The notes under the pieces: generated by a model
Database searches by the model: none
Told to the model about the DNA's origin: nothing
The model's input: the letters and a program-made list of their open reading frames with translations, nothing else
Program-made: the position numbers and the translations under genes
NCBI RefSeq assembly: GCF_000143415.4
Contig: NW_003314287.1
Span: 580,203-644,202, forward strand
Direction: 5' to 3'
Source: Selaginella moellendorffii
Lineage: Eukaryota > Plantae > Lycopodiophyta
Length of the DNA: 64,000 nucleotides
Part shown: positions 12,085 through 54,300 of the stretch, in pieces
How positions within the stretch are numbered: the first letter of the stretch is position 1
Layout of the letters: the number at the start of each line of letters is the position of its first letter

Positions 12085-12100
12085 TGGTGGAGATGAGGGG
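12085..12100 (+). promoter_or_regulatory. Primer binding site complementary to tRNA-Ala 3' end
   Basis: TGGTGGAGATGAGGGG starts 1 nt after the LTR and matches the reverse complement of the tRNA-Ala 3' end (...CCCCGCATCTCCACCA) with one mismatch. Confidence 0.8.
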
Positions 12101-12316
12101 CATCTTTGATTGTCTCTGGGGAGTGCTTGGATTTGGGATTTCGGTTTAGATCTAGCTTTTGCATTGTCTAGATCTAGCTTTTTCCATTTCCTTTCTTTTG
12201 TTCTTTCCTTTCAGGATTTTGGTTTAGATTTAGCTTTTTGCATTGTCTAGATCTACCATTTCTTTCCAGCTTTTTGTCATTTCTCTTCTTTTGCTCTTTC
12301 TTTCTCATTCATTTTC

Positions 12317-13249: not shown

Positions 13250-13288
13250 TGGAGGGACCTTGCGCGAATAAGTTAGTGACCCTTCCAT
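13225..13288 (+). promoter_or_regulatory. -1 programmed ribosomal frameshift signal (slippery heptamer plus H-type pseudoknot)
   Basis: G GGA AAC at 13225-13231 in the gag frame; 6-nt spacer; stem 1 13238-13246 with 13259-13267; stem 2 13249-13256 with 13281-13288; pol is in the -1 frame. Confidence 0.85.
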
Positions 13289-16716: not shown

Positions 16717-16748
16717 CGGCCTTCCATTATTCCGAGAGGAGGGGATGA

Positions 16749-16922
16749 TGTGAGGGCCAAGTGTACGGCTACGATGCCGTATACTAATATTAGCATAGTG
16801 GATTTTGGTAGCCATCGGATTGGTTTCAATCCGGACCATTCGCTCCTGTATATAAGCTAGGGTTTTTGGGCTAATTGATATGCACATTTCTGTATTCCCT
16901 TTCCATATTCCATGCACTCACA
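16749..16922 (+). repeat. 3' LTR of Gypsy element, preceded by PPT GAGAGGAGGGGA
   Basis: Direct repeat of 11910-12083; purine tract at 16734-16745. Confidence 0.97.
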
Positions 16923-17715
16923 ACTGGTAATGAATATTCTTAATATATCCTTATAAAAGATAAACTGACTAAGATAAATAATATCATTTTAAAATTCTAA
17001 TGAACTAAAATTACAATAATATATAACACTGTTCAAAACAAAAGACTAAGTTTTAATATAGCTAATTTTTTGTAAAAGAAATTAGTTACCTTTTTATTTT
17101 TTCTTAGAAATATTATTTAGTTTTCATTGATTTATAATTTCAAAATCAAGAATTTATTTTTAAAGTTTTAAATTTTGAATTTTCAAGTTTTTTACTGTAC
17201 CTAACAACAAAAACTTTTAATCTTTTACTTGTTAAATACAATAAAAAATAAATTGAAAATTAAAATTTTTCAACTTTTAAAACTAAAATATTAAAAATTT
17301 TAGTTGTTGAAAAAAACACTATTTTAAATTCTTCTTATCTACCCTATTTTTACCATATAAAATAATCAAATTATCTATGCAAACAAAATTATTTAGACAT
17401 AGTGCTTTCTTACAAAACTTGCATTTTAATTTTAAAGGATTATAATTTATTTTTTTCTTGAGAAACATAATTAAAGTTTATGCAATTTATTACAAATTTT
17501 AAATTCACTATATTTATCTAAGTGTTATTATGTTTTACATAACATATTCCTCTTTAAAACCCTCAACACCTTAACTTTTGATATTTACATTTTTTTAAAA
17601 CATTATAATAAAAATTAAATATATTTCAATTATGATTATGTGAGTTGTTATTTATTTTTTCCTTAAAAAGGGAAATAGGTTTTTGCTATGTTTAGCTGAA
17701 CATCAAGAAGTATAT

Positions 17716-18782
17716 TGTAAGCGACTAAATTTTCCATTCTACTTTAGTCATTTAACCGCACCTCCGACCAGTTGGAGGAGTCTCATTCACAACCTCCATA
17801 AGTCCAAATCAGGACTTGGGACTTGCTAGCCCCGAGAATGGCATCCATGCCACTCAACATTTGCACTTGGTCCAAGTGCTCCACGTGTCCAATCCCATGA
17901 CCGACACTCAAAGGTACCACCGACATGGCAGCCTGTTACGCTAAGGCCATGCCCAATTACCTTTGCTACACTGGTAGTCCAATACCACTTGCATCACAGT
18001 CTTGGCTCTCCAAGACTAGGCAAACCATCTGTGAATGGTCATCTCAGATCCACTCCTTAGCATCCTTAGAAGGCCCACTGACAAGGGGAATAGCCTTCCC
18101 CAACATCCCTCTGTCAGTCCTCATTAAGTCCCTTTCTGCCCCTGGCCTTGTTTGCCAACACTGCCACTGGATCGAAGCCCATAAGCCTGACCACTAAGTC
18201 CCACGGTCCTCTAGGACTTCCTCACCACACGACTGTGTCCTTGGTCATTACCCCAGAGGACTACTTCTCTTCCTTTCCACAGTCTGAGCCTTTGGGACAA
18301 CATTTCGGACACCGTGGCCTTACACGAACCACCTGGGTACTCTCCCCGCCTTCCGCCCTTGGGTGCTCTAGCCATGGGCTTAGAGCGAGGTTCCGTTGAG
18401 CCACGCCTGGTATCCAAGTAGGTAGTGCCACCCACACTTGGATTGGGAGCATCGGCCAATCGATATCCCGAGGGAACTAAAGTCGGTTTTTAAACACTTC
18501 ACCAAGCTACCCCACTTGTCAGTCTGTGTTCACTATAGTCTTGGACTTCCCAGTGGGCAGCTCATCACCCAACACTGGGTCTGGCCTTCCTGGGCCAAAC
18601 TGGCCTTTCCTGGCCAAACTGGCTCCACTGGGCTCCAACCCCCACACTCTCCATACTATACTTTTGGAACCCCCCGCCCCCCCCCCCCCCCCCCTAGGGG
18701 ACGATCGCTTTGGGCTTTCACCCAACTGCCTGTATTAGTATTCAGACTCGGACTCGGACTCGGTCCCGGATTCAGACTCAGA

Positions 18783-18825
<43 letters not shown>

Positions 18826-19384
18826 CCGGTCTCAGTTCCATCTCGGACTCCATCTCGAGTCCATCTCGGACTCCATATCAGACTTCACTTCGGGTCCGTA
18901 TCGGACTCCATCTCGGACTCCATCTCAGACTCCATCTCGGACTCCATCTCAGACTCCATCTCGGACTCTATATCAGACTCCACTTTGGGTCCATCTCGGA
19001 CTCCGTCTTGGTCCATCTCGGACTCCATCTCGGGTCCATCTCAAACTCCATCTCAGACTCCATCTCAGACTCCATCTCAGACTCCATCTCAGGTCCATTT
19101 TGGACTCTTTCTCGGTCCATCTTGGACTCCATCTCGGGTCCATCTCGAACTCCATCTTGGACTCCATCTCGAACTCCGTCTCGGGTCCCTTTTTAGAGCC
19201 TCGGTTATGGCTCGCTTCGTGCTCCTTCCTCAAGCACTTTGTTGGGAGTTCCACTCCCGCTCTCGACCTTTCAAGTCGGAGCTTTTAGTCCAAACGTGTT
19301 ACGCTCGTTTGGCTTTCGCTTTGGCCACTACCACATGGCACCCTTCCGGCTCCACTTTGGGGTCTAGGGATTTTGTGTCTCACA
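17716..19384 (-). mobile_element. Solo LTR (1669 bp) of the satellite-LTR non-autonomous family
   Basis: TG...CA termini; 5-bp TSD TATAT (17711-17715 and 19385-19389); colinear with the LTRs at 51289 and 57030. Strand is inferred from the PBS of the full copy. Confidence 0.93.
18743..19190. repeat. 6/12-bp minisatellite (GGACTC/GGTCTC, CTCGGACTCCAT) inside the LTR
   Basis: Directly visible tandem array; the same array occurs at about 52290-52820 and 58030-58585, and inverted and degenerate at about 48540-48845. Confidence 0.95.
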
Positions 19385-26049: not shown

Positions 26050-26470
26050 CGCCAATCACTGCGTCAAGCAAATCGATGCATCCAATTCCTCTGCAAAAAA
26101 TGCTTGGGCGCCTCGGTGGGCGCGGCAGATCATGGCAGGGACCATTCTCCTTTCTCAGCAGCGATCTTTCAAATGCCAAGCCTCGGATCGTGGAGTTTGC
26201 CCTTTGTGGGCGGGAACCACAAAATCTTTTTGACACAATTCAAGAACGCGATCTAATAGCTTGTATTGTAATGCTCACAGCGCTCACAGCTTTTTACGCC
26301 TTGAGGAGGGCCTTGGGAAGAAATCGCTGAAAGAGATCGTCTTGCCTGGACTGCCATGGTTGCTGCAAATGCCGGAAGGTAGACTGGAAAAGCACGCAAG
26401 ATGTTTAATCAAATGCTTCTCCACGTCAAAGCAGCAGGCCGCGTGTTCGATTCCAAGACCACATGGAAAA
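26050..26470 (+). pseudogene. Deletion-riddled relic of the SS-type PPR gene, directly upstream of P450 #2
   Basis: Blocks such as GCGATCTTTCAAATGCCAAG, CTCGGATCGTGG, CAAGAACGCGATCTAATAGCTTG and CGTCAAAGCAGCAGGC are colinear with 28300-28890. Confidence 0.8.
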
Positions 26471-26568
26471 ATTTCGATGATCCGCGCTTCCTCAGCTTTC
26501 ACATCGATCTGGTAAGCTCGTGCAAAATTCGTCATAAATTTGCCATTCTTTTCCTCCGCTCCTTTCAT

Positions 26569-28139
26569 ATGGATGTGTTCACAGCTTCCATCCTGCTCAT
26601 CTTGATCTTGCTTCCACTTCTCGGATTCTACTTTCGCCAGTCATGGCTCAAGCCGCCCTTGCCACCATCGCCATCTTCCGGCCTGCCGCTAATTGGCCAT
26701 CTCCATCTCCTGGGCAAACTCCCTCACCAATCTTTCCAAGCACTGGCCGAGAAGCACGGCCCCATTTTCTCGCTGCGATTCGGCTTTCGCCATGCCGTGG
26801 TCATCTCCAGCACCGATCTGGCGAAAGAGGTACTCAGGGTTCACGACGCAACGTTCGCTTCCAGGCCTTCCAACGTCGGAATGAACATTGGGTTCTACAA
26901 ATACCTCATGGGAGGAGCACCGTATGGCGATTTATGGAAGCAGCTGAGGAGGCTCTACAGCGTGGAGCTCCTCACCTCGAAAAGAATCGATTCCTTCCTC
27001 CCGCTGCGCTTGGAGGAGCTCTCTCTCATGCTGTCAGGCTTAGCAAGAGCACACGAGAGGAATGAGGCCGTGGACATGAGGAACCTCTTGACATGCTTCA
27101 CCTTCAACACCATCACCCGGATCTTGATGAACAAGAGGTACTTCCAGCACCAAGGAGAGGAGTTGCACGGCATTGATTCGAGCGAGGCCAGCGTCTTCAA
27201 GGCCATCCTGGTGGAGCTGTCCGAGACCGCTCTACAGTTTCGCATAAGCGCGCTGCTCCCTTCCTACCTCAGGTGGATCGACTGGAGCGTCTACTGGATC
27301 CGGAGGCTACACGCGAAGCAGGATCAGTTCCTGCAAAAGATCATCGACGAGCATAAGAACGAGAAGAACACATCGACGTCAAGCAAAGACATCATGGATA
27401 TGATGCTGGGGCTTCTGGCGGAGGACCCGCGAGGAGAAGACATAGTGAAAGCTGCCATGACAGTAAGCCACTGTTAGTCGAATGCCTAGAGCTTGATGGA
27501 TTTACTTGGCGTGCGCAGGAGCTTGTATCGGGCGGGACTGATACATCCGCGACGGTGATCGAGTGGGCCTTGGCAGAGATCCTTCACCGTGCTCCGCGCG
27601 TCTTGGGCAAAGCACACGACGAGCTCGACGCCGTGGTTGGACGCTCCCGGATGGTGGACGAGGCCGACCTTCCGCGCTTGCCTTATCTCCAAGCCATTAT
27701 CAAGGAAAACTTTCGACTCCATCCCCCGGCGCCACTCCTCGTCCCTCACATGCCGACGCATGAATCCAATCTAGCGGGCTACCGAGTTCTAGGAGGAACC
27801 ACCACCTTCGTCAACGTCTACGCCATCGGGAGAGATCCAGCGCTGTGGGACGAGCCCCTCGAGTTTCGTCCGGAGAGGTTCCTGGGCAGTTCCGTGGACG
27901 TCAAAGGCCAGGACTTTGAGCTGCTTCCGTTTGGCTCGGGACGAAGAGCGTGCCCGGGGATGGGGCTCGGGCTTAGAACTGTTCAGCTGGCACTCGCGAA
28001 CTTGATCCACGGCTTCCACTGGAGTGCTGCCGAGGAGAATGCGCTGGAGGAAGCTGGCGGCGCTGTCATCTGGGTCAAGACGCCGCTCAAAGCCATGGCT
28101 TCTCCGCGACTTCCAGTTGAGGTGCTCGCATGGAATTGA
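26569..28139 (+). CDS. Cytochrome P450, CYP71 clan, close paralog of 6174-7737; exons 26569-27462 and 27519-28139, about 504 aa
   Basis: Same intron position (56 nt); GGTDTS, ENFR, PERF, FGSGRRACPG; long near-identical stretches shared with P450 #1. Confidence 0.95.
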
Positions 28140-28237: not shown

Positions 28238-30307
28238 ATGCTCTTCAGGCGAAGCGTCTGCCTGGAAGAGATCCAATCGTGCAAGTCGCCTCTCCAAGCG
28301 CGAGAAATCTATGCATCGATTCCAGGAAATTCGCTCCAATTTGACGCATTCCTCTGCAACAAGCTCGTTCAGATGTTTGGGCGCCTGGGCTGCGTGGAGC
28401 GGGCGCGGCAGATCTTTGACGCCATTGCCGACAGGGACTCCTTCTCCTGGGGAATCATGCTCTCCATATACGCGCGCAGCGGCGATCTCTCAAACGCCAA
28501 GGGCGTCTTCGATCGAATGCCGAGGTGGAGTCTCGGATCGTGGACTGCTCTCCTCTCCGCATTTGCCCTCTCCGGGCATCACGAGGAAGCAAAAACGCTT
28601 TTTGATACGATGCAAGAACGCGATCTGATAGCTTGGACGATAATGCTCACAGTGCTCGCCACCTTTTCTAATATTGATGACGCTAAATACCACTTTGATC
28701 AAATGCCCGAAAGGGATCTCGTCGCCTGGACTGCCATGCTCGCTGCAAATGCCGAGCGAGGGCAAATGGAAAACGCTCGCGAGACGTTCGATCAAATGCC
28801 CGAGCGGAATCTCTTCTCATGGACCTCTCTCCTCAGCGCGTACGGACGCTCCGGTGACGTCAAAGCAGCAGGCAGCGTGTTCAATTCCATGCCCGAGTGG
28901 AATCTCGTGGCATGGACGGCTATGCTCACGGGATATTCCTTGAGCGGGGATGTTGTCGGGGCCAAGCGCGCGTTCGATAGCATGCCGGAGAGAGATCTCA
29001 TCGCCTGGACAGCAATGCTCTCCGCCTATGCTTTCAACGGGCATCTTCGCTACGCGCGAGAAATCTTCCAGCGAATGCCGGAGCGCGATCTAATTTCCTG
29101 GGCAACGATGGTTGCGGCACTTGTGGAGAACGATCTACTGGAGGAGTCGAAGGAGCTGTTTGATCGAATGCCGCGGCACTGCGCTCTCTCGTCTAATACT
29201 CTCCTCGGAGTATATGCCCAAAAGGGGTACGTCCACCAGGCGCGGAGATTGTTTGATTCCATGGAGGAGCGCAATCTGGTGACGTGGTCCAAAATGCTGA
29301 TGTGCTATGCCCTGGTTGGTGGGGTTGACGAGCTGGCGGCGCTCTCAAGGGGGCTCAAGGTCCACACTCTTGCCACGTGGAACGCTTTGCTGACTGGATA
29401 TGCCCAGGCAGGGGATGTTGAGGAATCGATGCGAATATTTGACGCTATGAAGGAGCGAGATCTCGTGTCATGGACCACGCTTTTGACAGTTTTTCTTCAT
29501 TCCAAATCTCTTTGCCCTTATGAATCTGTAAAACACGTATTTGATAGAATGCCTGAGCATGATCCAGTGTCTTTCAACTTGTTATTCACATCAGTAGCGC
29601 AGTTTGGCAATTTGGACTTAACCATAGAGTGTTTCGACCAGTTACCTTGTAAAGATTTAGTCGCATGGACGACATTGTTATGTATTTACGCTCATCATGC
29701 TTGTGTAGATGAAGCTAAAGTCCTTTTCAGTCTAATGCCAGAGAGAGATCTTATTGCTTGGAACTCGATGCTCACGACATATACCTCAAATGGGCATCTT
29801 GCAGCAGCTGGTCGCCTGTTCGATTCCATGCCGGAGCGAGACACAGCCTCCTGGAACGCAATGCTGGCGGCATACACACAGCACAACCAGCCTACCCATG
29901 CCCTAGATTCCTTCTTCAGCATCCCACTAATCCTCCCACCAAATGGAATCTCCTTTGTGTGCTTTCTCGTAGGCAGCAGCCAGCTCGGTAGGGTTTGGGA
30001 CGGGCGGAGCGGCTGGCGGTCAATGGTAGTTGACTATGGAGTCAACCCAACCAAGCAGCACTATTGCTGCGTGGTTGACCTTCTAGGCCGCGCGGGGTAC
30101 GTGGGCGATGCCCAAGACCTAATCGCGGGCATGCCCTTCGTGCCAGATGCCCTAGATTGGACGTGCTTGCTGGGCGCGTGTAGAAGCAGAAGCAACACTG
30201 ATCGCCAAGGAGGCGTGGAAACTAGCAAGAGCGTTTTGGATTTAAACGCGAGCAATAGCGCGGCATATTCGCTTCTAGCCAACTCCATTGGCGGGAATCT
30301 TCCGTGA
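28238..30307 (+). CDS. PPR protein dominated by tandem 31-aa SS motifs, ending in an E domain
   Basis: 689 aa; many FD.MPERDL.AWTAML repeats; HYCCVVDLLGRAG and WTCLLGAC..AAYSLLAN. Confidence 0.93.
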   Translation: MLFRRSVCLEEIQSCKSPLQAREIYASIPGNSLQFDAFLCNKLVQMFGRLGCVERARQIFDAIADRDSFSWGIMLSIYARSGDLSNAKGVFDRMPRWSLGSWTALLSAFALSGHHEEAKTLFDTMQERDLIAWTIMLTVLATFSNIDDAKYHFDQMPERDLVAWTAMLAANAERGQMENARETFDQMPERNLFSWTSLLSAYGRSGDVKAAGSVFNSMPEWNLVAWTAMLTGYSLSGDVVGAKRAFDSMPERDLIAWTAMLSAYAFNGHLRYAREIFQRMPERDLISWATMVAALVENDLLEESKELFDRMPRHCALSSNTLLGVYAQKGYVHQARRLFDSMEERNLVTWSKMLMCYALVGGVDELAALSRGLKVHTLATWNALLTGYAQAGDVEESMRIFDAMKERDLVSWTTLLTVFLHSKSLCPYESVKHVFDRMPEHDPVSFNLLFTSVAQFGNLDLTIECFDQLPCKDLVAWTTLLCIYAHHACVDEAKVLFSLMPERDLIAWNSMLTTYTSNGHLAAAGRLFDSMPERDTASWNAMLAAYTQHNQPTHALDSFFSIPLILPPNGISFVCFLVGSSQLGRVWDGRSGWRSMVVDYGVNPTKQHYCCVVDLLGRAGYVGDAQDLIAGMPFVPDALDWTCLLGACRSRSNTDRQGGVETSKSVLDLNASNSAAYSLLANSIGGNLP

Positions 30308-33618: not shown

Positions 33619-34309
33619 TACAAACCTGTAAAAACTTTAAGCCTAAACCTTAAACCATGGAGCCTGCCCTTTTAAATGTGGAATATCCTTGTTAGCCCTA
33701 AATGTGAACTTTATACATCGACACAGGGGGAAGTCGTCAGCGTCCGGATCACGTATGTCGCATGGGCGAGATCCACAAGCGCGTGCTAGGCATCGCGATT
33801 CCCGCTGTTTACACTTCGAAGGGCGTGAAGGCGTGCCTAGAACTTTGGATGTCCAGTTCTAGCTGCTTGGCAAGACACGCAAGGACCGCCATCGAGACAG
33901 TGATAAGAAGTTAGGAACTAGTAACGGCTCGAGGGTGCTGTTCACGTAGGAGATGAGCTTGGCCGGCATGCAGAGGTCGGAGCTGAATTTCTACGCCCTG
34001 GCGGCCGCGTCCAGGGTGCCGCTGGTGACGAGGACACGCACTCGGAGCTTGCTCCTCGAGGATGTGAAAGACGGAAGACCTGAAAGACTTTTGAGGATCA
34101 GCAGGTCCAAGTACCCGTATCCAGTCCATTTACATTCTCACAGAGTCTAAGAGCTTAATAATCTCAAGAGCCGAGAAACCAGACTCTGTGATCCAAATGG
34201 ACATGAATCGTTCTAGTTTTCTTTTGTTTTCCTCACAAGGATCCTTGAGAAGAAAACTGCATTTTGCGCGTTGCCTCCAATGGATCCACATCCAACCTCT
34301 GGAGTAGAT

Positions 34310-34705
34310 GAAAGTTTCTTCGATACTCCTCTTTGTTTTTGTTTTTGATCCTGACCTTTTAGAACATGCAAGTCCCTATAGGGATCTTGTAGACCCACTT
34401 TACAAAATAAGCATATGGTGTGAATAATCTGTGGCACAGGCAGCTGGAAGGCCCTACAATGCTTCCAGGGGCTTCCAGCTGCCTGTGCAGCAGATTATTC
34501 ATACCATAGTCCCACTTTAAGGTGAAGAAGAATGTGCTGCGTAGTTTGCAAATTCAAGTAAGAAAAAACAGTTGAAGTAAGAACGATGAAGTTTTGCTGC
34601 GTTTTTGCTTAGGAACTTGTTAAAGCTAGCAGAGGAGAAGGGTGTCAAGTACATCCCATCTCTTGTTTGTTTAAATTTTCAGGATTGAGAGTTATGCAGA
34701 CAATG
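34310..34705 (+). pseudogene. Degenerate intron-containing fragment of the macrodomain gene at 40304-41958
   Basis: Colinear with the minus strand of 40520-40870: intron GATACTCCTCTTT..., exon AGGGGCTTCCAGCTGCCTGTGCAG, exon GGAACT..AAAGCT..GGAGAAGGGTGTCAAGTACATC, then GTTATGCAGA. Confidence 0.88.
34414..34508. ncRNA. Candidate miRNA-like hairpin (42-bp stem, 11-nt loop)
   Basis: Arms 34414-34455 and 34467-34508 pair with 38 Watson-Crick pairs, 2 G-U pairs and 2 mismatches. Expression is not shown. Confidence 0.5.
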
Positions 34706-35026
34706 CTTCCAAGATTTTGTTGAATACCAACAAAGAAAATGGGTGATCGATTTTTTTTTGTTTTTCTTTCTCTTCTTGCTTTGATCAATGGAACCTTTCT
34801 GCTTTTCCTTTTAGTAAATATATTTTGTTTTGGAGAATGCTTTTTCCAAGATAAATACTTTTCATGTGGAATTGAAGCTTTTTAATAGGAAAATATTAAA
34901 AGTATATCAAGTTATCAACACCAACATATATTAATTTACCATAGACAGCAAGATTGCGTTGAGAATCCATCCTTACAATACTTTAAAATGTTAAATAATA
35001 AAAATAAAATTATAAATTGCTAGATT

Positions 35027-35646
35027 TGTGACTGCATGGAATATGGAAAGGGAATACAGAAATGTACATATCAATTAGCCCAAAAACCCTAGCTTATATA
35101 CAAGAGCGAGTGGTCCGGATTGAAACCAATCCGACAGCTACCAAAATCCCATTACGTTAATATTAATATACGGCATCGTAGCCGTACATTTGGCCCTCAC
35201 ATCATCCCCTCCTCTCGGAATAATGGAAGACCATCAGGGTTTTCTTGTAGATGGGCCGGGATCTGGAGGAACATCAGGAGGAGGCATCGGCGGATCTGTA
35301 GATGGTATTAACCGCACCTGATCCCTTTGTATGAAGTGTTTTAACCGTTGCATATGCACAATCTTTGGAGGATCGGCTTGTTGGACGTCATGTTGAACCT
35401 CATAAACTTGTGGTCCAACTTGCCGCAACACTCAATACGGTCCTTTCCACTGTGCAAAGAGCCCCTTAGATAAACCATGTACCGTAAGATGGGGAAAACA
35501 GACTAACACCAAATCATCCACTTTGTACTCCGCAGGTGGATGATGATGGGAGTTGTAGCGCTGTTGTTGTCCCACTTGTATGCGGCCTAAGTGTTCAGCA
35601 GACTCCGCTCAGACAAATGGAAGAATGCTTGTCAAATATTGATCCC
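35027..35646 (-). mobile_element. Truncated copy of the Gypsy element: integrase 3' end, PPT and 3' LTR (35027-35201)
   Basis: Reverse complement of about 16303-16922. Confidence 0.95.
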
Positions 35647-38600
35647 CTCTCAAAGCATTTCAATGTGCTGATTACCGCTGCTTCCTAAAGGCATTACCAC
35701 AACACGTGGCCTCCATCAAGTGGAACCATCGGGCAGGAACATGTTATGAACATCCTAGTGTCTAGCTCGTACCGAAACTGTGAAAAGCTCGTTGTCCTTT
35801 GTGATCAAAACAGGAAGGCCCCTATTCCGGAAGGGACTTGAGCTTCCTCCAGCCGTCGTGTATGTCAGTGTGCAATGTCCCTTTAGAGCACGTTGTTGGA
35901 CTTCGAGAAGATCGTTTCTGTTATTTTTGCAAACTTTGCAGTCCTCAGCGAACAGGTGCCATTGAAACAGCCTTTGCAGCTACGATCATCGCTTCATTGC
36001 CACCACGATATAAGATATCTCTTCATATAGTACGTGTTCTCGTTCGGAAATAGTACACTCTCGTTGGGTTGTTGACTAGCTACCTCCCATATGATATGAG
36101 TTAGCAAACGTGACATCATTCAGAGGACTATCATAAAATATTTTAACCTATTAGTTTGCCACCATGATTTTCAAATGACTCCCAAGTCAAATATCTCTTA
36201 TACACACTTGTTCATTTGCTCCTTTTAAGGATATTAAATGCCACTTTTGACAAGATAAGCATCTTGAGTGGGGATGCTTTGGCAAGTGTGCACAGACTTG
36301 GTTTGATTAATAAGACTAAATAACTTTGGAAACTGAATCAAGAGTTTCTTAACATCATGCTCCTGCTCTATAGCAGAGAGCAAAAAGCGTAAATAGCAAA
36401 GATGGAAGATTTTTAAGCACAACTATTTGACCAGTGCTTGATAGCAATAAGAGGAGGATGCCTTGGAATGTGAGGAATTTTTTATCAAAATCATATTACA
36501 CCCTAACAACTCACAATCAATTAACACTTGAGATAATATCATAAACTTGGTTGAACAATGAAAGGGTGTATATAAATATTTTGTCACATATTGAGAAAGA
36601 AAGAGTCACACACTTTTGAGAAAGCATAGGTTTTAGGGTTTGGAGAGTGAGATTGGAGGTGCATGAGGGCTTATGCATTTTTTAGAACACATTATTCGAG
36701 GGAAATAATATATTGGTATAATGTATAGCACAATTCCCTTAATTTTGACATTCAAAACATTGTGGATGACAAATATAGTTTAATACCATATGCCCGCATG
36801 CAAAAAATCATGAACCACAACCATAACCTTGATGTTTGCTACCTCCAAACACTGTCACACCCACCACAATAACTATTATGCCTTTGTACACACTCACATC
36901 ACTATTTTGCCTCTATATATGATCATATGTGCCATGGCTTGTTAGTTGCTACTGTAAGTATAGCAAATAAAATTCAAAAGACAATCGAAGAATTCTACAG
37001 AGAGATGAAAAACTACTTAACATCTCCATCCAGGGAAGAGGTATGTTTAGATTACCAAAGTCTCATACTTATAATACAAACAATCAATTGTTTAAATTAT
37101 ACTAATGTGTCAACCTAGATTAGATACAATAATCTTGTTTATATCTAGATTATTTTTAAATTTACTTTGGCACATCAAACACAATTTCATGCTGCAATTT
37201 ATCTATAATAGCTCTTTTTTCCTAGAATTTTAGACTGGAACTGACTGGGAAGTCCAAATTCAAGAATTTACACATAATAATTTTCCTCTAGCATTTCTAA
37301 AAAGATTATATATTAATCGAAAATTCTTTTTGATTGTTTACAATCAACCATGCTTTCTTGCAAGTGCACACCTCATAAGCCCTTGAACCCATATGGATTA
37401 TATCTCAAATCAAGTTGTTTACATAATGATAATTGATAATTTTTTCTAATCTACTCAATTGATATGGAATATTTCTAGATTGTCTATTTTTTTCCTCCAC
37501 CACCTTTATAAATGTCTTGTCATCTCACTTGCACCATCTCATTGCCTTAAGAACTTGAACTTGAGCTTATCCTAGTTTTTAACAACCCAATATATATTTA
37601 TAGTCATTGAGTTTTTGTCTACTATAAAAAGAAAAATTGTGTAAGCTTCTGAGTTCATGCTTCATGCATAATATTATTTAAACCAAAATATTCTTAACTC
37701 CTCCTAAAATTGTTAACTAATTAAAGAAAAGAATGCACTTTTATTTATGGGCTTTTTATTTTTATATTTAAATGCTACTCTCCTTTGGCTGCTAAAATCT
37801 AGAGTAAAATTAAATTTTAAACCATTTCTTTTGATTGCTTATGATTTGGTATAGAAGCTAACAAAGCTTTGTAAAGTCAATATTTTATTTTAACTGAGAT
37901 AATAAGTATTAAGTTGAGTCCTCAAAAGTCCATAACTTATACCATTGAAAATTATAATTATTCTTTCAATAAGCACTATAAAAGTTGTATCAACTTCTAA
38001 TTCTTGCTATGCAAGTATAAGCCTCAATAATTTGTCATACTTTTGTGTGGTCATCAATATCTAAGAGCTGGATAAACTTATAAGAAAATGGAAGCTCTTG
38101 TCAAAGCAAGTGGTGGAATCTTGATAATAATTGAAAACCACTTTGTAGAAACTTTTGGACAAATTAACTTTGAAATTGATCCTTTCTATCATGCAAAGCA
38201 TATGAGAAAAGGCACTAATATACAAAATATTCACAACTTCACTTCATAAATCGTTGTAAAGCCTTCCAAGTTTATGAAATCTTTCATTCCAAGGGATTTC
38301 AATTTTTAGAGCTTATGAGGAGAAAAATAAGTTCTTAAGAAACTTTTCACACTTGAATTGAGAGTTGAACTTTAAACCTATTACATTATGAAACAAGGGT
38401 TTGGTATACACTTAATATCCTCTATAAGGACTAGCTGCTTATATCTTCAAAATAGTGTCAATGGCCTTATGCAAGGAATAGGGTCCCCTACCAATTAAAA
38501 TAGCCAGATGTAGAACAAGAAGTGATATACTTAGTGAGAGCTAAATTAATATCTCAAGTGGTTGGCCATATGTAAGTAACCAAAAAGAATAATTCAAAAG

Positions 38601-39429
38601 ACGATTTGTAAAGGTTCAAATATAGAAAGAAAAAATCTATGAATACTGTTTTCACTTGGTTAAAGGTTTTAAGATACTTATGGTTAAGCTTTTTTGGGTT
38701 TAAATGATGACCTCTCGCAAAATCTAAGCTTAAGAGCCTACAGTTGGTATCAAGAAAATTTTGGGTTTGACTTTGTTATTTGGCTAGGGGAATCACACCA
38801 TATAACCTTTTGGGAAGTCTAAACTCATGAGGTTATATTTAGTATTAGAGAGGTATCAAATTTAACTCTTTTAGTTGGCTAGAAAATTACATCACATGTT
38901 GAGATTGTTTAAACTTAGAAGTTTACATTTGGTATCATGGAAGTTTTGGGTTTAATTTTATTAGTGCTAAGGGAATTAAATTATATGTTAAGATTAACAT
39001 CTGGTAAAGGTTTAATTTACCTTTGGCTGGGTTTGACTTTAAGCAAAAGTTTAGCAAATATAAATATGTATTCTTAGAAAAGGAAATTAAAATGATTTTC
39101 TTTTAATATTATTTATTTTTAATTTTCTTTTCAAAGATCCTAAGCAATTTAGAAATATTACATATGTCAATCTAAAATTTTTAAAATAAAAAAAACATAT
39201 AAAATATCAAAGAAAATTAACTTTTACTGTATAATATAGCAAATTATTATATAATTTTAAAGATTTTTCTTTAATAAAAACAGATAAATACTTTGTAAAA
39301 GAAATTACTTTATAATCAAGAATAAAAAATATTTATCATAAGATTTTTTATTTCTCACACAAGTGTTATATGTCTTAAAACACAGAGAATATATTTAATT
39401 TATATAATTATTTAATAAAGCTACTTTTT

Positions 39430-40310
39430 TATAAAAGAAATTAGATACTCACAATACCTCTATAATATTTTCTCAAAAATATTATTTTAGTTTATTTTGT
39501 TATTTTACAATTTCAAAATTAAATCTTTATTTTAAAATTTTAAAAATTTTAATGTTCACAGTTATCAAAGGAAACACTACTTCTTCTTGAAATTACCTTT
39601 TATTTACCCTTTGTTCATCATATTAAAAAAGGTAATTATTTTTGCAAATAAAAATATTTTCATAAAACAAAGAATAACATTAATTAATTTTCTATTTTAT
39701 TTTGCAGATAAACACTTCCAAGTTCGATATACTTGAAAATTGGTTATATATTAAAGCATGGGACACTTAGTATCTTTTTCTTTTTATTAAGCTTTGTTAA
39801 GCTTGCAATCTTTAATTTTGGAATTTCAAACTTCCAAGTATATTGAGTTTTTTAAGATTTTGTATTTGAACTTTAACGGGTAATACTTTCCTTTGTTTTT
39901 CTTGATAAATACAATTTGGTTTTGCATAGCTCATTACAATTTTAGGATTTACCACAATTTTTGGAGTGCTATCATTTTTTTAATGGTATACTCCTTTTTA
40001 AAACATTTTTTTTATAAACTTTTGATTTGTAATTTTAAGAAAATTTTATATTACATATAAAATATTTTAGAATTATTGTAATCACTCTTGCTTTTATAGT
40101 TACTTATATATTTCTAATCAATTTTAACTATATTTAATCAACTCTTTTACTATCAATTTTACTAAATTTTATATAGATTTTATATAAAGTTTTTCTAAAA
40201 TAATTAGATTTTAAAATTTTAGTTTGAAAAAGTTTTTAGTTTGTGTTTTTAAAGTAAATTATTTTACTTGAACATTTGTTTAATCTTAAATGTTCAATTA
40301 AGATTACCCA
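39430..40310. repeat. Old AT-rich dispersed repeat; a second copy at about 17070-17700 plus 19440-19715 is split by the solo LTR
   Basis: Colinear blocks, e.g. AATCA.TTTTAACTATATTT..CAACTCTTTTAC and CTTAAATGTT.AATTAA.ATTA.CC, at both loci. Confidence 0.6.
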
Positions 40311-41958
40311 CTCACATCGTGCTCAAAATTGAGTTTTGCTAAATCCACCCAAGTCTGCCAAGCACTAGGCTCAAACAAAACAAAATGGATCTACATAAAC
40401 GAAAACAGGAAAGTTCAAGCAAGATAGAAGGAGAACAAAATAAGGATCACTCACCTCTGAAAAGCCCTCAGAATTTTCTTTGATGGTATTCAACGAGATC
40501 TTGGCAGCGTCGTCCAATGGATATCTGCATAACATTCATTCAATCATCGAGGATTTAAACAAGGAAGCTTTTACCCGTAGATCCCACAGGAGATGGCCGG
40601 GAATGCGATGTACTTGACGCCCTTCTCCCTTGCAAGCTTTATCGAGTTCCTGAGCAAAAAAAGCAGCAAAGCTTCATTATTCTTTTTTCTTTTCTCACTT
40701 TTACCTGTAGGCACTTGCAAGATAAGCAGCACAGTCATCTTTCACTTCCTTGTCATAAACCGGGCCTACGGTGTGGATAATCCGCTGCACAGGCAGCTGG
40801 AAGCCCCTAGAAAAAAACTTCAATCAAGAACAAAATGAAAAAGAGGAGTACCAAGAAGAAAACTTACGGTGTCTCCACGGCCATTCCAACGCCACAACGA
40901 ACACCACCGTGGCTAGGCAAGTCCCTACAAGCACGGAGTAGCTCTCCTCCAGCGGCACGATGGATCGCTGCAAGAAAAGAAAGAAAGAAAGAAAGAATTG
41001 TCTTACGATCGATCAAACACTAAAGCTTTGGAAGAAAAGAAAAAAAGAAAAAGAAACCTTACGAACCTCCGTCCACTCCACCGCCTCCCATCATTAGCTC
41101 GTTGGCCGCATTCACGATGGCATCCGACTCTCCATCAATCTTCCACTTTGTGATATCCCCTCGCTGGAGGACGAGCTTGCATTCTCCGGAAGGGAGCTTG
41201 AACTTGAGCGCCTGGGGAAGGAGATCCGGCTGCGAAGAGCTGGAGAAGGACCTCATGGCTGCCTTGGAGCGTTTAGTGGTCGCCACCCCTTCACCACTCG
41301 AGAGGAAGCCACGCTTCCCACATGAAAAGGAAAGCCCCATTGTGGACGTGGACAAAGAGTTTTTAACTATTTGTTCTTCCTCGCTTTGGTAGCGTTTTCT
41401 CGCTAGCCGAGCAGTGAGAAGATCTCCTCCTTCTCCTCCTCCTCCTCCTCCTTCTCCTTCTTCATAGTTTTTCACCGTCCTTCGCTCGAGGAGATGATGA
41501 TCCACGCTGCCAAACTGGAGCTCCTCCAGGCTTGCTGGAAGAAGAGAGGGAGCAAGCTGCTGGATCATGCCATCTTGCTGAGATTTTTCCAGGCTTTTGG
41601 CCTGGATGGAGACCATTTCCATGGTGCCAAACTGGAAAACGTCCAAGCTGCCGAACTGGAACTTCCAGTTTGCGAGAAGAGGCTCGCCGCGCTTGTCCCG
41701 ATCGTGCCGGGTGATTGTCGCTGCCACTCTGTGTGAATCCCGGCGCTGGAAAGAGCTGCTGTGGATGTGGATCCATTCTTGCGCGGCATTGATCGCGGCC
41801 ACGTCCATTGGAGCAGCAAAATGCCTGGAAGATCGAAGAGGAGGATTCTTTTCGCTCACCAGAGATCTTGAATCGCCGCGGCTGGAGATACTCCTGGAAA
41901 TGTGGGGTGACCTCGAGAATCTAGCAACAGACCCCAAAAATAATTTCCAGCGCCTCAT
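40304..41958 (-). CDS. MacroD-type macrodomain protein (ADP-ribosylhydrolase / O-acetyl-ADP-ribose deacetylase-like) with long N-terminal extension, 6 exons
   Basis: GDITKW, AIVNAAN, GGGGVDGAIH, IIHTVGP, AFPAISCGIYGYP, IHFVLF; Arg/Ser-rich N-terminus resembling a mitochondrial presequence. Confidence 0.92.
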
Positions 41959-42757
41959 CGTCTCATCAAACACAAACATTCCCTCCCCTGTTCTAGGGCA
42001 AAAGGGTTAGGGTTCTTCGCGACAACGATGGCGTTTAGCGGGAGCGCTAGCAATTCCAGGTGATTCTCTCTCGCTCTCTCTCGCTCTCTCCTCATTGTCT
42101 AGATCCGATCTTCCAGGCAGAGGCAGAGCTCCAATCGGCTGCCACAGCGGGAGGAACACGTCCAGCTCCGGATTGATCCCGTCCACGGCGATCTCGACGA
42201 TCACGTCCAGGATCTCCACCAGCGAGTGGTCCTCTTGAAGAATGTAAGGGTTTGGATCAATCAAGAGAAGATTCTCACGACCGATCTCCACAGGTTGCGA
42301 AGGAAATCGAGCAGGAAACGAAGTACCAAAATGACCTTCTCAATCAGCTGGTATAATCGTTTGATCTATCATAGCTCTCTCTTTTCTTCGATGATATCTT
42401 CTTTTTTGTTTGCTCGATCAGCTCTTATCTTTCTTCCTTTTTTTGTTCTTCATTCTCCTAGGAAGAAACGATGGCCAAGGCTGGCGCTGGGCTCAAGAAC
42501 AGCATGAACAGACTATCCAGAGCGATGGCACAACATAGCTCCAACCACGTCCTCCACGTCGTCATGTTTGCTCTGGTTTGCTTCTTCTTTGTATACCTCT
42601 GGTCTCGATTTTCCAGATAGTAACAACTGATCTTATTTGCGATCGATCGATCACACCTTCTCTCTTGCTTTGAGGTAAAGGAAGGTCTTTCCATTCCAAG
42701 AAATTTTCTAAAGATGTTACAACACACAGGTTATAAATCAAAAGACTTATAGCTGCT

Positions 42758-44214
42758 CTAGTGCCGCTCCACCACTGCTCCCAAGCTGTCCGTGACGAAG
42801 AACCTCAGCGTCCTGGGGTTGACAACCTCCAGCGTGCACAGATCCCCGATCCTCATCTTGTAGTGCTTGACGATGGCCGACCAGCCCTGCGTGAGCATCC
42901 GCTTCCTCGCCACAATCCACCTCATTTCCCATTCTTTGCCGGCTCTGTCAACCAGCTTCACCATGCACGTCTGTGGCGGAAGCCACCGCAACGCAAACGC
43001 CTTCTCGATCGTCTGGAGGAACCAAAGTCAGGCAAAGGAGACGAAAAGAGCGACTCTTACCAGTCGAGAGTAGGGAGCGACGTTGGTCGTCCGGATGGGA
43101 ATGGTTATCCTCGGCAGTGGAGTTGTAGCAGCAGCAGCAGCAGCAGTAGCAGCGGTAGCAGCGGTAGCATCAGACGCAGCAGCAATTTGAGGCTTGGTCT
43201 CCAAAACGTTCACTGGATTCTCCGGCTCGGCAACAGGAGTATCGGGTGCCGTGACAGCAGGATTCTCCACCACGCCAGTGTTATTCGTAACGTCCGGCTC
43301 CGGTGCAGCAGGGTTGGCAGCAGCAGCCGCCTCGATGGCGGAGACAGAAATAAAGACCTTGAAGTTCTTCCTCTCGGTTTTCAGCACCAGGTGTATTCCT
43401 GCTTCCTCCGCGGCACCTCGTCCTCCAGACATATCGATCTCTAGCGGTTCCTGTGCTGTTCCCAGTGACTGCCTTCGCTCTGCTCTTTCCGGGGTTACCA
43501 TCTCGCTGGCTGGTGTTACTGGTGTTGCTGCTGCTACCGGTGCAGCATGAACTTCACCATCCTCCAACCGAGCAGCTTTACTTGGAGGACCATGCTCGAG
43601 CTCTTGCTCCTGGGCAGTCCTCTTCCTCAGTTCAAACTGATCTTCCGACTCTGGAGCTGGAGTAGTGGCAGTCGCAGGTGCAGTAGCAGCAGCAGTAGCA
43701 GCAGCAGCCGGATCTTCCACAAACTTTGAGGCTACAGTTTCTTCTTCCACGCCCGGCATCGCGGTCTCTGCAACAGCCGACTCCACCTCCGGCTGCTCCT
43801 GCTTCACCTTGACATTCCGCCTGGCATCCGAGTCCTCCCCGGCCCGCGTTATCTTCACCGAGAAGAGGCTGGGACTGAGCATGGTGAACATCACCTGGTC
43901 GTCGATCTCGAGCTCGTTGTCCCTCGCAAACGCAGTCCACCCGGGCCCCCGAAACGCATACGTGGAGCTCTTCAGCACCGCAACCTTCACCACCCATTTC
44001 TTGTGGGAGTTGATCTTGAGCACCGCTTCGCTGGCCAGCTTGCCGCGCTGCTCGTCGTGAAACTCCTTTGGAATAGGCTGTGGCAAGGCATCACGAGTTA
44101 GTTCGTCTTCTAGAGATCGAGAGAGCTTACCAGGCATCCCGGGTAGTCCTTTGATACCGCTACTCGAGTGATCGTCTTTGTGAAACACGGCAGTGTGCCG
44201 ATCTTGGAGCCCAT
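42758..44214 (-). CDS. Two-B3-domain REM-like transcription factor, 3 exons
   Basis: Exon 1 MGSK..PCFTKTI..GCL splices to PIPKEF..W.V..GPGWTAFARDNELEIDDQVMF; Ala/Pro/Glu-rich linker; second B3 LVDRAGKEWEM..LTQGWSAIVKHYKMRIGDLC. Confidence 0.9.
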
Positions 44215-48399: not shown

Positions 48400-51300
48400 T
48401 ATAGTGCTCAAGAACAAAGTGCTCAAGAAAAGTGCATGGAGCAATTGGTAAATGAGTCTTTAAAAAAGAACACAAGAAAGATTGACACAAGGCAAGTGTC
48501 ATGAAACATGAAAGTGTCAAGAACAAGTCTAAAATAGGACCCAAGAAGGAGTCTGAAATGGAGTCCAAGAAGCAGTCCAAAAAAGAATTCAAGATGGACT
48601 CCGAGATGGACATAAGATGGAGTCTGAAATGGACCCAAGATGGATCCGTGATGAAGTCCGAGATGGACCTAAGATGGAGTCTAAGGTTGAGTTCAAAATC
48701 AAGTCTGAAATCGAGATCGAGATCGAGACCGAGACTGAGATCGAGAGCGAGAGCGAGACCGTGACCAATACTGAGTCCAAGACCGAGTCCGAGACCAAAT
48801 CCGAGACTAAGTTTAAGTCCGAGTCCAAGTTCGAGTCCAAGTCCGAGGGTGAAATCCCAAAGAGATCATCTCCTAGACCCTAAGAGGTTTGGTGAGCTCC
48901 AAAAATATACTAAGGGAGGACTCTAGTATAGCTAATTTGGCCAAGAAATGCCAATGTGATCAAGGAAGGGTATACCCATGTGTTGGGTGATGATATAACC
49001 ACTAAAGAGTCCAAAGCTAGAGTGAACAAGTAAAGTAACTTGGTAAAATGTTCAAAAGCCAACTCTAACTCCCTAGAGAGATTGAATAGTCAAAAGTACT
49101 CCCAATCCAAATGTGGGTGGCATTACCTACTTGGATATTTAGTGTGGTTCATCAAAACCTCACTCTCGCCACATGGCTAAGACACTTAAGGGTGGAAAGT
49201 GGGGAAAGTACCCAAAAGGCTTGTATAGGGTTATTGTGTTTCAAAATGTTATTTTAAAGTCCCAAATTATGGAAAGGAAAAAGAATAATCCTTTAATGTA
49301 GTGATGAAGGATACGGTCACATGGTGAAGAAGTCTTAGAGGTCAATAAGACTTAATGGTCAGGCCTTTAGGCCTTACTCAGTGGCAGTGTTGGCGAATAT
49401 AGCCATAGATGAAGAGGGACTTGGTGGGAATAGAAGAAAGGACATTGGGGAAGGGTATTCCCTATATCTTTAAACATCCTAAGGGTGTTAAAGTGTGGTC
49501 AAAGGATGACCACTCATAGACAGATGGCTCAGTCTTTGAGAGGTAAAACTATTATATAAATGGTCTTGGACTACCAATGTGACAAGGGTGAATGGCATAA
49601 CTTTAGTGTAACAAGTTAATATATCAGTAATACCTTTGGGTGTCAGTCATGAGATCGAACATGTGGAACACTTGGACCAAATATAAAAGTTGAGTGGCAT
49701 AGATGCCATTCATGAGGCTAGTATATCCTCAAGTTAGAAATAAGATTTATAAAGTTTGTGAGTGAAACTCCTTTAAGTGGTTAAAGGTGTGATTAAGTGG
49801 CTAAAGTAGAATGAAAAAATTAATTGTTTACAATTTGGTATTGAAGTTGTTCCTTAATCCAATTGTTATTGGTGGTCAAATATATTACCACTTGATATTG
49901 GCATTGAAAAGTCCTAGAAATGGGTTTTCCTCGAGGAGTAGTACTTTCCACCTTAGTTTATATATAAACATATTAACAATATGGTGAATACAAGGGGGCC
50001 AGTAAGATCTTGGGAACAATATAAGGTTTTCCTTAGAGAGTTGAGGATGTGAACAATAAAAGTGTTTGACTTAGCAAACTGGATAATGTGGTTGTAGTAA
50101 ATAACTATAATTGGGATCACGAGAATGATGAAAACTCCTAAATAATAAAAGAGTTATAAGATTATCCTCATATAATTGAAGATAATGCTTAAGAATTTGA
50201 TATTGGAGTTAGTGACTGTATGAGGTCAAATATAAATAAGGATACAGGTCCTTGAAATAGTAGTCAAGGCTACCTTTAATAAATGCTGGAATAACTTAAA
50301 GAGTTGGGGATGTACTTAGAGAATGAGTTGGTATTCTTATGATATAGATAGAGAGTTCTAAGGGGCAAATGTAGCCCATATGAAACAAAAAATAATCAAG
50401 TGTCGGAATAACACTTGCAAAGACAATCCTTATAAATAGGATATGAATACAATAAGTTGTATTCTAGAAAGTTCAAAAGTAGAACATTATAAGTCATCAG
50501 CTTAATAATGTCTAAAAGTTGGATAACTCAAGTGGAATCAAAGAATGGTCCTAAAGGATTGGTAGAAGCATTTAGATTAAGGTATGTGGTACCCTACGGA
50601 GGACAGAGAGGATTATAAGATTCAAGTATGAGACCAATAAGTATCTCATTGATGGCAGAATGTGCCATACTAAAGTCGTGGGAAAAGTGTTTCAGGAAGA
50701 AAGCAACTTTAGCACAGAGTTGTGTATGAACACTATGATATAATGTTAACTGATAGTTGGCATGAGAAATGACTATTTTGGTCTTGGCAAAGACTTAGAC
50801 ACAAGTGGAAAGTGTCATGAGAGTAGGCTCATGGAGCTGATAGAATAAAGACCCCAAGTGTTTCAAAGGATAAAGCCTTGAAGTCAAATTAGTTGGTTCA
50901 TGAAAACCTTTTGGTCTTGCAAAAGAAATCCCATGAAAATAGGATTGGCATAGCCTAAGTTGGAAAGCATGTGATTCGAGTGTGTGAACCCAAATAATGA
51001 TGGAGGTGTGAAAGCACTAGCAATGAGTTATAAGACTTAATGACTATAAGGTAATTAAGCAAAATGTGTGTCATAATTGATTGAATTGGTGGAAGTCAAC
51101 TTCCCAAGACTTTTTATTGGAATAATAAGGAAGATAAAAATATCCTTTAAGGGATTAATTGTTTATGTTGCAATATAGTAAGTCAAGGTCATAAAAGGAA
51201 ATGTTCATTGCCAAAGAAGTCCATCATAAGGACACCTAAGCAATCTTAAACACCTAAGAAGTGGTGTTGAGTATCATGAGGGCATTAGTGTAAGCGACTA

Positions 51301-54300
51301 ATTTTTCCATTCTACTTTAGTCACTTAACCACACCTCCGACCGCTTGGAGGAGTCTCATTCACAACCTCCATAAGTCCAATTCAGGACTTGGGGCTTGCT
51401 AGCCCCAAGAATGGCATCCATGCCACTCAACACTTGCACCTGGTCCAAGTGCTCCACGTGTCCGGTCCCAAGACCGACACCCAAAGGTACCACTGACATA
51501 TCGGCCCGTTATGCTAAGGCCATACCCATTCACCTTTGCTGCACTAGTGGTCCAATACCACTTGCATCACAATCCCGTCTCTCCAAGACTGGGCCATCCG
51601 TCCACGAGTGGTCATCCTAGATCCACTCCTTAGCATCCTTAGGGTGCCCACAGACTTGGGGAATAGCCTTCCCCAAAGTCCCTTTGTCAGTTCCTACCAA
51701 GTCCCTTTTCTGTCCATGGCCATGTTTGCCAACACTGCCACTCGATCAAGGCTCACAGGCCCGACCATTAAGTCCTATGGTCCTCTGGGACTTCCTCACC
51801 ATGTGACTGTATCCTTAGTCACTACACTAGAGGACTGCTCTTCCTCCTTTCCCCCATTTAGGACTCCAGGACAACATTTTGGAACACCATGGGCCTACGC
51901 GAGCCCCGTGGGTACTCTCCCCACCTTTCGCCTTTAGGTGCTCTAGCCATGGGCTTAGAGCGAGGTTCCATTGAGCCACGCCAGGTATCCAAGTAGGTAG
52001 TGCCACCCATACTTGGACTGGGAGCATCGGCCAGTCGATCTCCCGGGGGAACTAGAGCCGGCTCTTGAACACTTCACCAAGCTACCCCGCTTGTCGGTCC
52101 GTGTTCACTCTAGTCTTGGACTTCCCAGTGGTCAGTTCATCACCCAACACTGGGTTTGGCCTTCCTGGGCCAAACTGGCCTTTCCTGGCCAAACTGGCTC
52201 CACTGCAGTCCTCCCCCTTACTATACTTTTGGAGCTCACCAAACCCCCCAGGGTCTGGGAGACGAACGCTTTGGGCTTTCACCCTCTCAGACTCGGACTC
52301 GGACTCGGACTCGGACTCGGACTTGGACTCGGGCTCGGGCTCGGTCTCAGCCTTGGCCTCGGTCCCGGTCTCGGTCCCGGTCTCGGTCTCGGTCTCGGTC
52401 TCGGTCCCGGTCTCGGTCTCAACCTCGGACTCCATCTCGGACTCCATCTCGGGCTCCGTCTCGGTCCATCTCGGACTCCATCTCGGACTCCGTCTCGGTC
52501 CATCTCGGACTCCATCTCGGGTCCATCTCGGACTCCGTCTCGGTCCACCTCGGACTCCATCTCGGGTCCATCTCAGACTCTGTCTCTGTCCACCTCGGAC
52601 TCCATCTCGAACTCCATCTTGGGTCCATCTCGGACTCCATCTCGGACTCCATCTCGGGTCCATCTCGGACTCCGTCTCGGTCCACCTCGGACTCCACTTC
52701 GGGTCCATCTCGGACTCCATATCAGACTCCATCTCAGTCTCCACTTTGGACTCCATATCGGACTCCACTTCGGGTCCATCTCGGACTCCAACTAGGGTCC
52801 GTCTCAGACTCCATCTCAGACACTTCCACGTGTCATATGTTGGTCCTTTTTGGGTCCCTTTTTGGAGCCTCGCTTATTGCTCGCTTCGTGCTTGTTCCTC
52901 AAGCACTTTGTTGGGAGTTCCACTCCCACTCTTGACCTTTCAAGTTGGAGCTTTTAGTCCAAACGTGTTACGCTCGTTTGGCTTTCACTTCGGCCACTAC
53001 CACGTGGCACCATTTCCAGCTCCACTTTGGGGCCTAGGGATTTTGTGTCTCACAACTCCACCACCCATAGACGAAGTTCGATGTCCTCATCGAACGGTAA
53101 ACTATTTTATAAAGTAACACCCGCATGTGTTACCATTTCCATCCTTGGCCCCTAGCCAATATTTGTCAATGGTTTGACATTGAAGGCTCACCATGCCTTC
53201 TCCATATTCGTCAATGGTTCGACACCAAAGGCTCACCATGCCTTGCCCATCCTCTAAGGAGGATAGTCTCTCCAACTTAGAGACTCACTTGACCACCTGG
53301 GGTGGTTTGCTCTTTTTTATTGGTTCAGTTCTCGCTAAACCCGTTAGAGACACCCTCTCTAACTCAATTCCAGTACTCATTCTTGAGTAGTCACAGATTC
53401 CATTGATCTACCTTTGCACTTTGGAATGTTTACTCTTGACTTTTTGGAGTCAATTTCCTAGGTGTCTCCGACACCTTGCCTTGCACATTTTGTGCAACTC
53501 CACTTCCCCTCCTAGGAAGTTCTCTACTCGAGGGCACTCTCATCCTCTTTTCTATTTTTTGTGCCACCATTGGCATTACGTTCCATTTATCATTATTTGT
53601 GCTAGGGCTGTCCACGGCCCTATCTTTTGGCTACTTAGTTGCTCCTTCACTTAGAGCCTTTCCTTTGCCAAATTGGAGCACTTGGGAATCCATCCTTGGA
53701 AGTCCACTTCTTTTTCCGCAATCCGTTAGCATCAAACACATTAGTGTTCCTTGGTTAACTTTGCCACTTGGATTCTTTCCAATGGATCCCACGGCCCTAT
53801 CTTGGCCACTCATCTTTTGCTCCTATCCATTGATTGTTGCACCAAGCAACATAGGATCGCTACCTCCATTTTTGAGGTTTCCTTTCGGTTCCATAGTAAA
53901 CACTTTGCTTTGCCAAGTCCAAAGGGTGTTCACCCCTAGTACGTCTCTTTAACATTTTTTGTCGTGAGCTTTATCCACAGCCCAACTTTTTGAGACCCTC
54001 CCTTGGATCTTTTATAGAGACTACTTTCCTTGGACTTACTATGCCATAGCATTGACATAGCTCATTTCCCTTAGGTGTGCTTCCCACTTGGTCACCTCAA
54101 CCAAGCCACACCTTTATCAATGGTTCAAATCAACACTTTGAACTAGGAATCATATTCCTTAACCCAAACAAAGACTTGGTCCTTGTTTACCCACAAGATC
54201 ACCTAGTGATCTCATCTCGACCCCTTAATAGGTCTATCAATAGGGACTAGGTCTTCCAGACCCTTCTAAGTTGTTGACTATGACCCCGGGGGCATCCCCC

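Follow-up and report, generated by a model that had tools for sequence, protein, structure and literature searches.

A hairpin in a decaying macrodomain pseudogene of Selaginella moellendorffii: a probable neutral by-product of DNA repair or replication, complementary to its parent gene

Within the 64-kb stretch of Selaginella moellendorffii DNA analysed here (the window), two 42-nt arms at positions 34414-34455 and 34467-34508, 90% complementary and spaced 11 nt apart, fold into a strong hairpin inside an eroded copy of a macrodomain gene. We consider it probable, at roughly 60%, that this hairpin, although real, is neutral and arose as a by-product when DNA was repaired or replicated in a dying gene copy. 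The origin of its arms by inverted duplication inside the pseudogene is well supported by the alignments described below, and a small-RNA function is no more than plausible, on grounds of complementarity. Most likely, the hairpin is silent, or at best an incidental low-level source of siRNAs, and not an established regulator; this absence of function is one that we infer from the combined evidence on divergence, promoter content and database matches.

On the plus strand, the 42-bp stem consists of 38 Watson-Crick pairs, 2 G-U pairs and 2 mismatches (1x1) with zero bulges, and it closes on an 11-nt loop, in agreement with the composition given in the original prediction. On the minus strand, all four non-Watson-Crick positions are mismatches. 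The original prediction had also proposed folding positions 34380-34540, and this segment indeed formed a strong hairpin as RNA, with a minimum free energy of -84.2 kcal/mol (z -9.9) on the plus strand and -80.9 kcal/mol (z -9.3) on the minus strand, as measured against 200 dinucleotide shuffles, none of which (0/200) equalled the real hairpin. The 116-nt core (34405-34520) gave fold z-scores of -12.0 and -11.3 on the plus and minus strands, respectively. Furthermore, when the whole window was scanned for inverted repeats of at least 22 nt, the hairpin was the sole pair that was not of low complexity, the remaining 15 pairs all being low-complexity sequence.

Alignments by blastn, tblastx and local alignment placed a partial genomic copy of the macrodomain gene at about 34190-34745 (plus strand), corresponding to positions 41010-40473 of the intact gene on the minus strand, so that pseudogene and parent gene are convergent. 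The copy holds the end of intron 1, exon 2, intron 2, exon 3, intron 3, exon 4 and intron 4, and terminates in part of exon 5; its upstream alignment to the gene scored 65 compared to a shuffle maximum of 44. Ungapped identity to the gene was 77% in intron 2, 77% in the rest of exon 3, 79% in intron 3, 80% in exon 4, 86% in intron 4 and 74% in exon 5, and the reading frame is broken by in-frame stops and many indels. Thus, the collinear alignments, stops and indels confirm that the hairpin lies inside an eroded copy of the macrodomain gene, as had been claimed. Because intron sequence is present, the pseudogene is a genomic segmental copy, and the included introns rule out an origin as a retrocopy. 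Moreover, the copy begins in intron 1 or exon 2 and carries neither exon 1 nor anything upstream of it, and thus inherited no promoter. A short way upstream of the hairpin, the pseudogene holds two more small inverted repeats. The one at 34215-34258 is an imperfect palindrome of 18-27 nt around a central GGATCC (fold z -1.65, not significant), and the one at 34138-34191 is a pair of 11-nt perfect arms with 32 nt between them, the fold of which is likewise not significant.

Each arm of the hairpin shows homology to the first part of exon 3 in the parent gene. The 3' arm (34467-34508, plus strand) is the pseudogene's own in-place exon 3 start in sense orientation; its collinearity with the gene extends leftward through 6 nt of acceptor sequence and also rightward, and it belongs to a 210-nt collinear alignment. 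The 5' arm (34414-34455, plus strand) repeats the exon 3 start in inverted orientation, reads antisense to the macrodomain mRNA on the plus strand, and is identical to the gene at 41 of 49 positions. This homology of the two arms to the gene, in opposite orientations, bears out the proposed birth of the hairpin by inverted duplication in a macrodomain pseudogene. A three-way alignment of the two arms and the gene delimited the 11-nt loop (34456-34466) and showed that each arm extends 6 nt into intron-derived sequence at the loop. Since both arms enter intron-derived sequence by 6 nt, the original centre of symmetry lay at about 34460-34462; on this alignment, the present 11-nt loop is a partly decayed palindrome.

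The 5' arm is contained in a 100-nt insert (34363-34462, plus strand) located between the homologue of the intron-2 acceptor and the in-place exon 3, a site at which the gene has about 10 nt and the pseudogene about 113 nt. The inverted arm copy accounts for 49 nt of the insert and comprises the exon 3 start plus 6 intron bases. Of the 51 nt of the insert that remain outside the arm, 28 fall within exact matches of at least 8 nt to nearby sequence, compared to 12.6 nt expected from shuffles (P 0.03). An 11-nt patch at 34368-34378 (plus strand) is an exact antisense copy of exon 2 sequence at 40917-40927 of the gene, and these are the only two copies in the window (0.03 expected); the same patch also forms half of a small palindrome across 34368-34390 in the fold of 34360-34400. 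In addition, the insert carries the left copy (34390-34402, plus strand) of a 13-nt direct repeat, identical at 12 of 13 positions to the right copy (34507-34519, plus strand), which is native exon 3 sequence directly after the 3' arm. Both copies share one transversion relative to the gene, which favours local copying. Thus, the direct repeats said to flank the stem do exist, but the right copy is native exon and the pair is not a target-site duplication.

Other parts of the insert are less readily assigned. A 10-nt spacer pairs with the right repeat on the minus strand through G-U only, and may continue the inverted copy in a form decayed by transitions. The 12-mer at the loop (34456-34467) is identical to 34700-34711 in pseudogene exon 5, 244 nt downstream (0.03 expected), which may represent one more templated patch, sharing 5 nt of microhomology with the junction, or a coincidence. 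The stretch 34363-34389 (27 nt) lacks an evident source. A DUP-INV-DUP model (a simple direct-inverted-direct triplication), in which these 27 nt would be a decayed first copy of the exon 3 start, is unsupported, as their alignment to the gene was no better than that of shuffles (P 0.41). The template of the left arm could be either the right arm or the gene, which are not distinguished because the paralogue at 62298-62408 (46% amino-acid identity) is too distant to polarise the three differences from the gene that the arms share, and two of these three shared sites are CpG transitions; the transversion shared within the 13-nt repeat tips the balance towards a locally made copy.

From this anatomy we infer a repair mechanism of the following kind. 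A fragment of the neighbouring MacroD-type gene, lacking exon 1 and the promoter, would have been duplicated some 6 kb from its source in the opposite orientation, and would then have decayed. A later break or stalled fork at the pseudogene's intron 2/exon 3 junction may have been resolved by template switching, through fold-back or templated filler-DNA synthesis, which would have added about 100 nt: the 49-nt inverted copy of the exon 3 start, the 13-nt direct copy and at least one short exon 2 patch. A near-perfect palindrome would thereby have been made in one step, its arms presumably diverging since then to differ at 6 of 46 positions.

A single template-switching event is documented to produce inverted repeats, alone or together with direct ones, and such events can seed miRNA hairpins (PMC10710096). 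The patchwork of hairpin and direct repeat observed here is consistent with switching of this kind, or with templated filler synthesis at a break. A template-switch mutation is recognised by an inverted copy that adjoins its source, replacing or adding sequence in one event, together with an outgroup that preserves the pre-event state; comparison of the pseudogene with the gene shows the adjacency and a direct-plus-inverted pattern, and makes the hairpin a candidate case. The hairpin further resembles the template-switch miRNA hairpins (PMC10710096) in that its stem falls within their 30-55 nt class, and in having an accompanying direct repeat and later point mutations. In contrast, that work concerned primates and used ancestral reconstructions, whereas here the comparison is between pseudogene and gene, and the insert holds extra patches. 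More than one exact repair pathway is possible. A single switch would leave the extra patches of the insert unexplained. Templated filler DNA at the junctions of plant double-strand-break repair was reportedly described by Gorbunova and Levy in 1997 and by Salomon and Puchta in 1998. Filler DNA of this kind is similarly pieced together from short copies, some direct and some inverted, of sequence near the junction; however, it is usually known from transgene or induced-break assays, whereas here it is assigned from the anatomy.

We also compared the divergence of the arms with that of the pseudogene around them. Over 46 positions of the three-way comparison, the differences from the gene were 3 shared by both arms, 2 confined to the right arm and 4 confined to the left arm. 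The two arms thus disagree at 6 of 46 positions (13%), and the hairpin is not a fresh duplication. Identity to the gene was 38/42 in the right arm, 36/42 in the left arm and 236/303 in the pooled flank. The claim that the stem is better preserved than the flanking pseudogene held nominally for the right arm (one-sided Fisher test, P 0.039, post hoc) and failed for the left arm (P 0.17, likewise post hoc). No other 42-nt window of the pseudogene is as well kept as the right arm (90.5% compared to a median of 67% over 42-nt windows, gaps counted), and neither arm contains an indel (0 in each), whereas the flank contains many. Both post-duplication transitions yield G-U rather than A-C on the plus strand. 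These three observations count against the neutral reading. The exon piece in question encodes the parent's most conserved macrodomain motif, and consequently the gene lineage adds fewer changes there than in the flanks. Altogether, neither the arm differences nor the Fisher tests gave a significant sign of selection for pairing, nor any against it.

The parent macrodomain gene occupies about 40300-41980 on the minus strand, 6.3 kb from the pseudogene. Its exons read as an intact MacroD-type domain, with Pfam Macro matches in exon 3 (40806-40712, E 8e-7) and exon 4 (40651-40574, E 2.5e-7); exon 3 spans 40712-40806 (minus strand), with bounds read from the sequence. Both the Pfam search and the target scoring were carried out exon by exon on unjoined exons, and so cover only sites that lie within a single exon. 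Exon 1 (41059-41979, minus strand) encodes a 300-aa low-complexity N-terminal extension with repeated FQFG(S/T)-type motifs, and this extension had no match in Pfam.

The plus-strand 5' arm contains a perfect 17-nt antisense run to the gene (34434-34450 = 40787-40803), just as predicted, and the reverse complement of the 3' arm contains a perfect antisense run of 25 nt (34467-34491 = 40784-40808). Positions 40808-40807 are the intron AG, hence exon 3 begins at 40806, and the perfect run therefore measures 23 nt in the mature mRNA (40784-40806). Thus, the 25-nt match of the original prediction stands on the pre-mRNA and shortens to 23 nt on the spliced transcript; similarly, the arms are homologous to the exon as proposed, but the interval assigned to it, 40767-40808, takes in the two intron bases. 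The predicted small-RNA target site in exon 3 is 40784-40806. When all 21- and 22-mers from the hairpin were scored, 55 of them scored 0-4 against exon 3. RNAs of the plus-strand 5' arm scored 1-4, the best plus-strand 21-mer (34434-34454) having one mismatch to exon 3, and minus-strand RNAs within 34467-34491 matched perfectly. Small RNAs from the hairpin, scored within exon 3, would accordingly reach plant targeting stringency against the founder mRNA, and small RNAs from either strand would match exon 3 of the macrodomain gene.

This complementarity raises the alternative that the hairpin is a young, lineage-specific MIRNA or hairpin-siRNA gene, the 21-nt RNAs of which, produced by DCL1, or by DCL4/DCL3, would cleave or repress the neighbouring macrodomain mRNA in exon 3. 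We regard this as unlikely, although the machinery exists: S. moellendorffii has DCL1, DCL3 and DCL4, and degradome data show miRNA-guided cleavage in this species (PMC5569507). The structure is also suitable. The plant MIRNA criteria of Axtell and Meyers 2018 (10.1101/213314) describe a single foldback whose duplex has no secondary stems and tolerates up to 5 mismatched positions, of which up to 3 may be asymmetric, together with reads of a 20-24 nt miRNA and its miRNA* at a precision of at least 75% in at least 2 independent libraries; the hairpin has the structural features called for, as its foldback is far below 300 nt in length and every 21-nt duplex within it stays within the limit of 5 mismatches. 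Base-to-loop processing by DCL1 involves a lower stem of 15-17 bp followed by a 21-nt duplex (PMC11317159), and the 42-bp stem accommodates both. If transcribed from either strand, the hairpin would therefore have the geometry of a short base-to-loop plant pri-miRNA, with lower stem, duplex and small loop, and would yield 21-nt RNAs with 0-2 mismatches to parent exon 3. The 21-mer at 34430-34450, which starts with U, lies at the expected first base-to-loop cut and has a target score of 3.5, and other registers score 0-1.

The arms are homologous to a founder gene in opposite orientations, which is one criterion for an inverted-duplication proto-MIRNA, beside small RNAs that complement the founder mRNA and a locus that is transcribed and diced. 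Judging from its anatomy, the hairpin stands where the inverted-duplication route to MIRNA genes begins. As in MIRNA birth by inverted duplication (Allen et al. 2004; PMC11317159), the homology of the arms extends beyond the 21-nt duplex, the stem is near-perfect, the founder gene is nearby and the small RNAs would be complementary to it. However, the repeats of proto-MIRNAs are often hundreds of nucleotides long, whereas the arms here measure 42-49 nt and lie in a promoter-less pseudogene fragment. Most such inverted repeats never turn into miRNA genes, and in Arabidopsis halleri an origin from inverted duplications of coding genes is rare among confirmed young miRNAs, applying to only a handful of the genes (10.1101/2024.07.25.605110). 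The nominally better preservation of the right arm would be consistent with a functional small-RNA gene; on the other hand, the pseudogene inherited no promoter, the differences between the arms are as drift predicts, and Rfam, literature word searches and survey supplements contained no match. Sequence words of the hairpin were also absent from the listed candidates of You et al., only 69 of 209 of which mapped to the genome.

Two sources of transcription in the neighbourhood can be named, both speculatively. A plus-strand gene upstream of the hairpin ends at 33618, 800 nt away, and read-through from it could supply transcription of the hairpin on the plus strand. A truncated 3' piece of a Gypsy-like element (35027-35646, minus strand) is 92% identical to 16304-16923 and ends in a 174-nt LTR (35201-35027, minus strand), itself 94% identical to the LTR at 11910-12083; this LTR is oriented toward the hairpin, which lies at a distance of 520 nt, and read-out from the LTR could supply transcription on the minus strand. 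The fuller version of the small-RNA reading, namely a lycophyte locus between proto-MIRNA and MIRNA, born in a pseudogene by template switching, that is transcribed from the upstream gene or the LTR and produces a 21-nt RNA cleaving the canonical MacroD-type mRNA in exon 3, seems to us distinctly improbable. If true, it would represent the first case in plants of an ADP-ribose eraser gene controlled by a small RNA. More generally, if the hairpin is active, it would be a cleanly dated miRNA born from a target fragment in an early-diverging vascular plant, with legible junction anatomy, that places an ADP-ribosylhydrolase under small-RNA control and joins the template-switch route, so far described in primates, to the plant inverted-duplication model. 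If it is silent, which we think likelier, it is ordinary pseudogene wreckage that illustrates the raw material for such genes.

It is very unlikely that the hairpin is an already catalogued S. moellendorffii MIRNA gene in miRBase or PmiREN. Rfam omits some single-species miRBase families, which leaves this reading some room; nevertheless, in a cmscan covering all 4227 Rfam families the only matches, to the animal families mir-578 (33.6 bits, gathering threshold 98) and mir-3102 (29.8 bits, gathering threshold 61), stayed below threshold and mostly reflect the long clean stem, and the Rfam 15 covariance models gave nothing at gathering threshold over the entire window. Literature word searches with 12-16-mers of the arms returned, in the papers covered, unrelated primer sequences only, with no occurrence in a plant or miRNA context, and the supplements of two miRNA surveys that include Selaginella (PMC5569507, PMC9698635) contained none of the arm words. 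An exact look-up of four ORFs of the window, including the ORF across the hairpin, found none of them in the protein collection searched.

Finally, a small foldback or MITE-like transposable element inserted with a target-site duplication of 9-13 bp, which would explain a 13-nt direct repeat flanking a terminal-inverted-repeat structure and would fit with MITEs being a major source of plant miRNA hairpins (PMC9641971), is extremely unlikely, since collinearity with the gene on either side of the right arm and right repeat shows that these were never inserted, the arms are exon sequence, and no second copy exists within the 64 kb. Insertion of a transposon with target-site duplication was accordingly rejected, the right-hand repeat being native exon sequence and the structure being single-copy in the window.

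The remainder of the window contains several genes and repeats. A full Gypsy-like element is present at 11910-16922 (plus strand), with LTRs of about 174 nt at 11910-12083 and 16749-16922 and plus-strand ORFs at 12317-15945. Upstream of the pseudogene on the plus strand are a cytochrome-P450-like gene of two ORFs (26401-28139), recognised by eye from the translations, and an intronless gene for a PPR protein of 689 aa (28238-30307), which falls among Streptophyta PPR clusters. The region between the pseudogene and the macrodomain gene (36000-40500) is very AT-rich (GC 17-36%) and poor in ORFs, and within it 39411-40030 resembles 17052-17590. A gene for a B3 DNA-binding-domain protein lies at 43028-44188 on the minus strand (Pfam B3, E 9.5e-9). 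A repeat family of about 1.3 kb is represented at 17713-19000, 51286-52565, 57029-58318 and 48600-49834, three copies being 82-83% identical and one inverted copy 69% identical, and shows a tandem-like internal structure around 18750-19100, 52400-52800 and 58190-58590.
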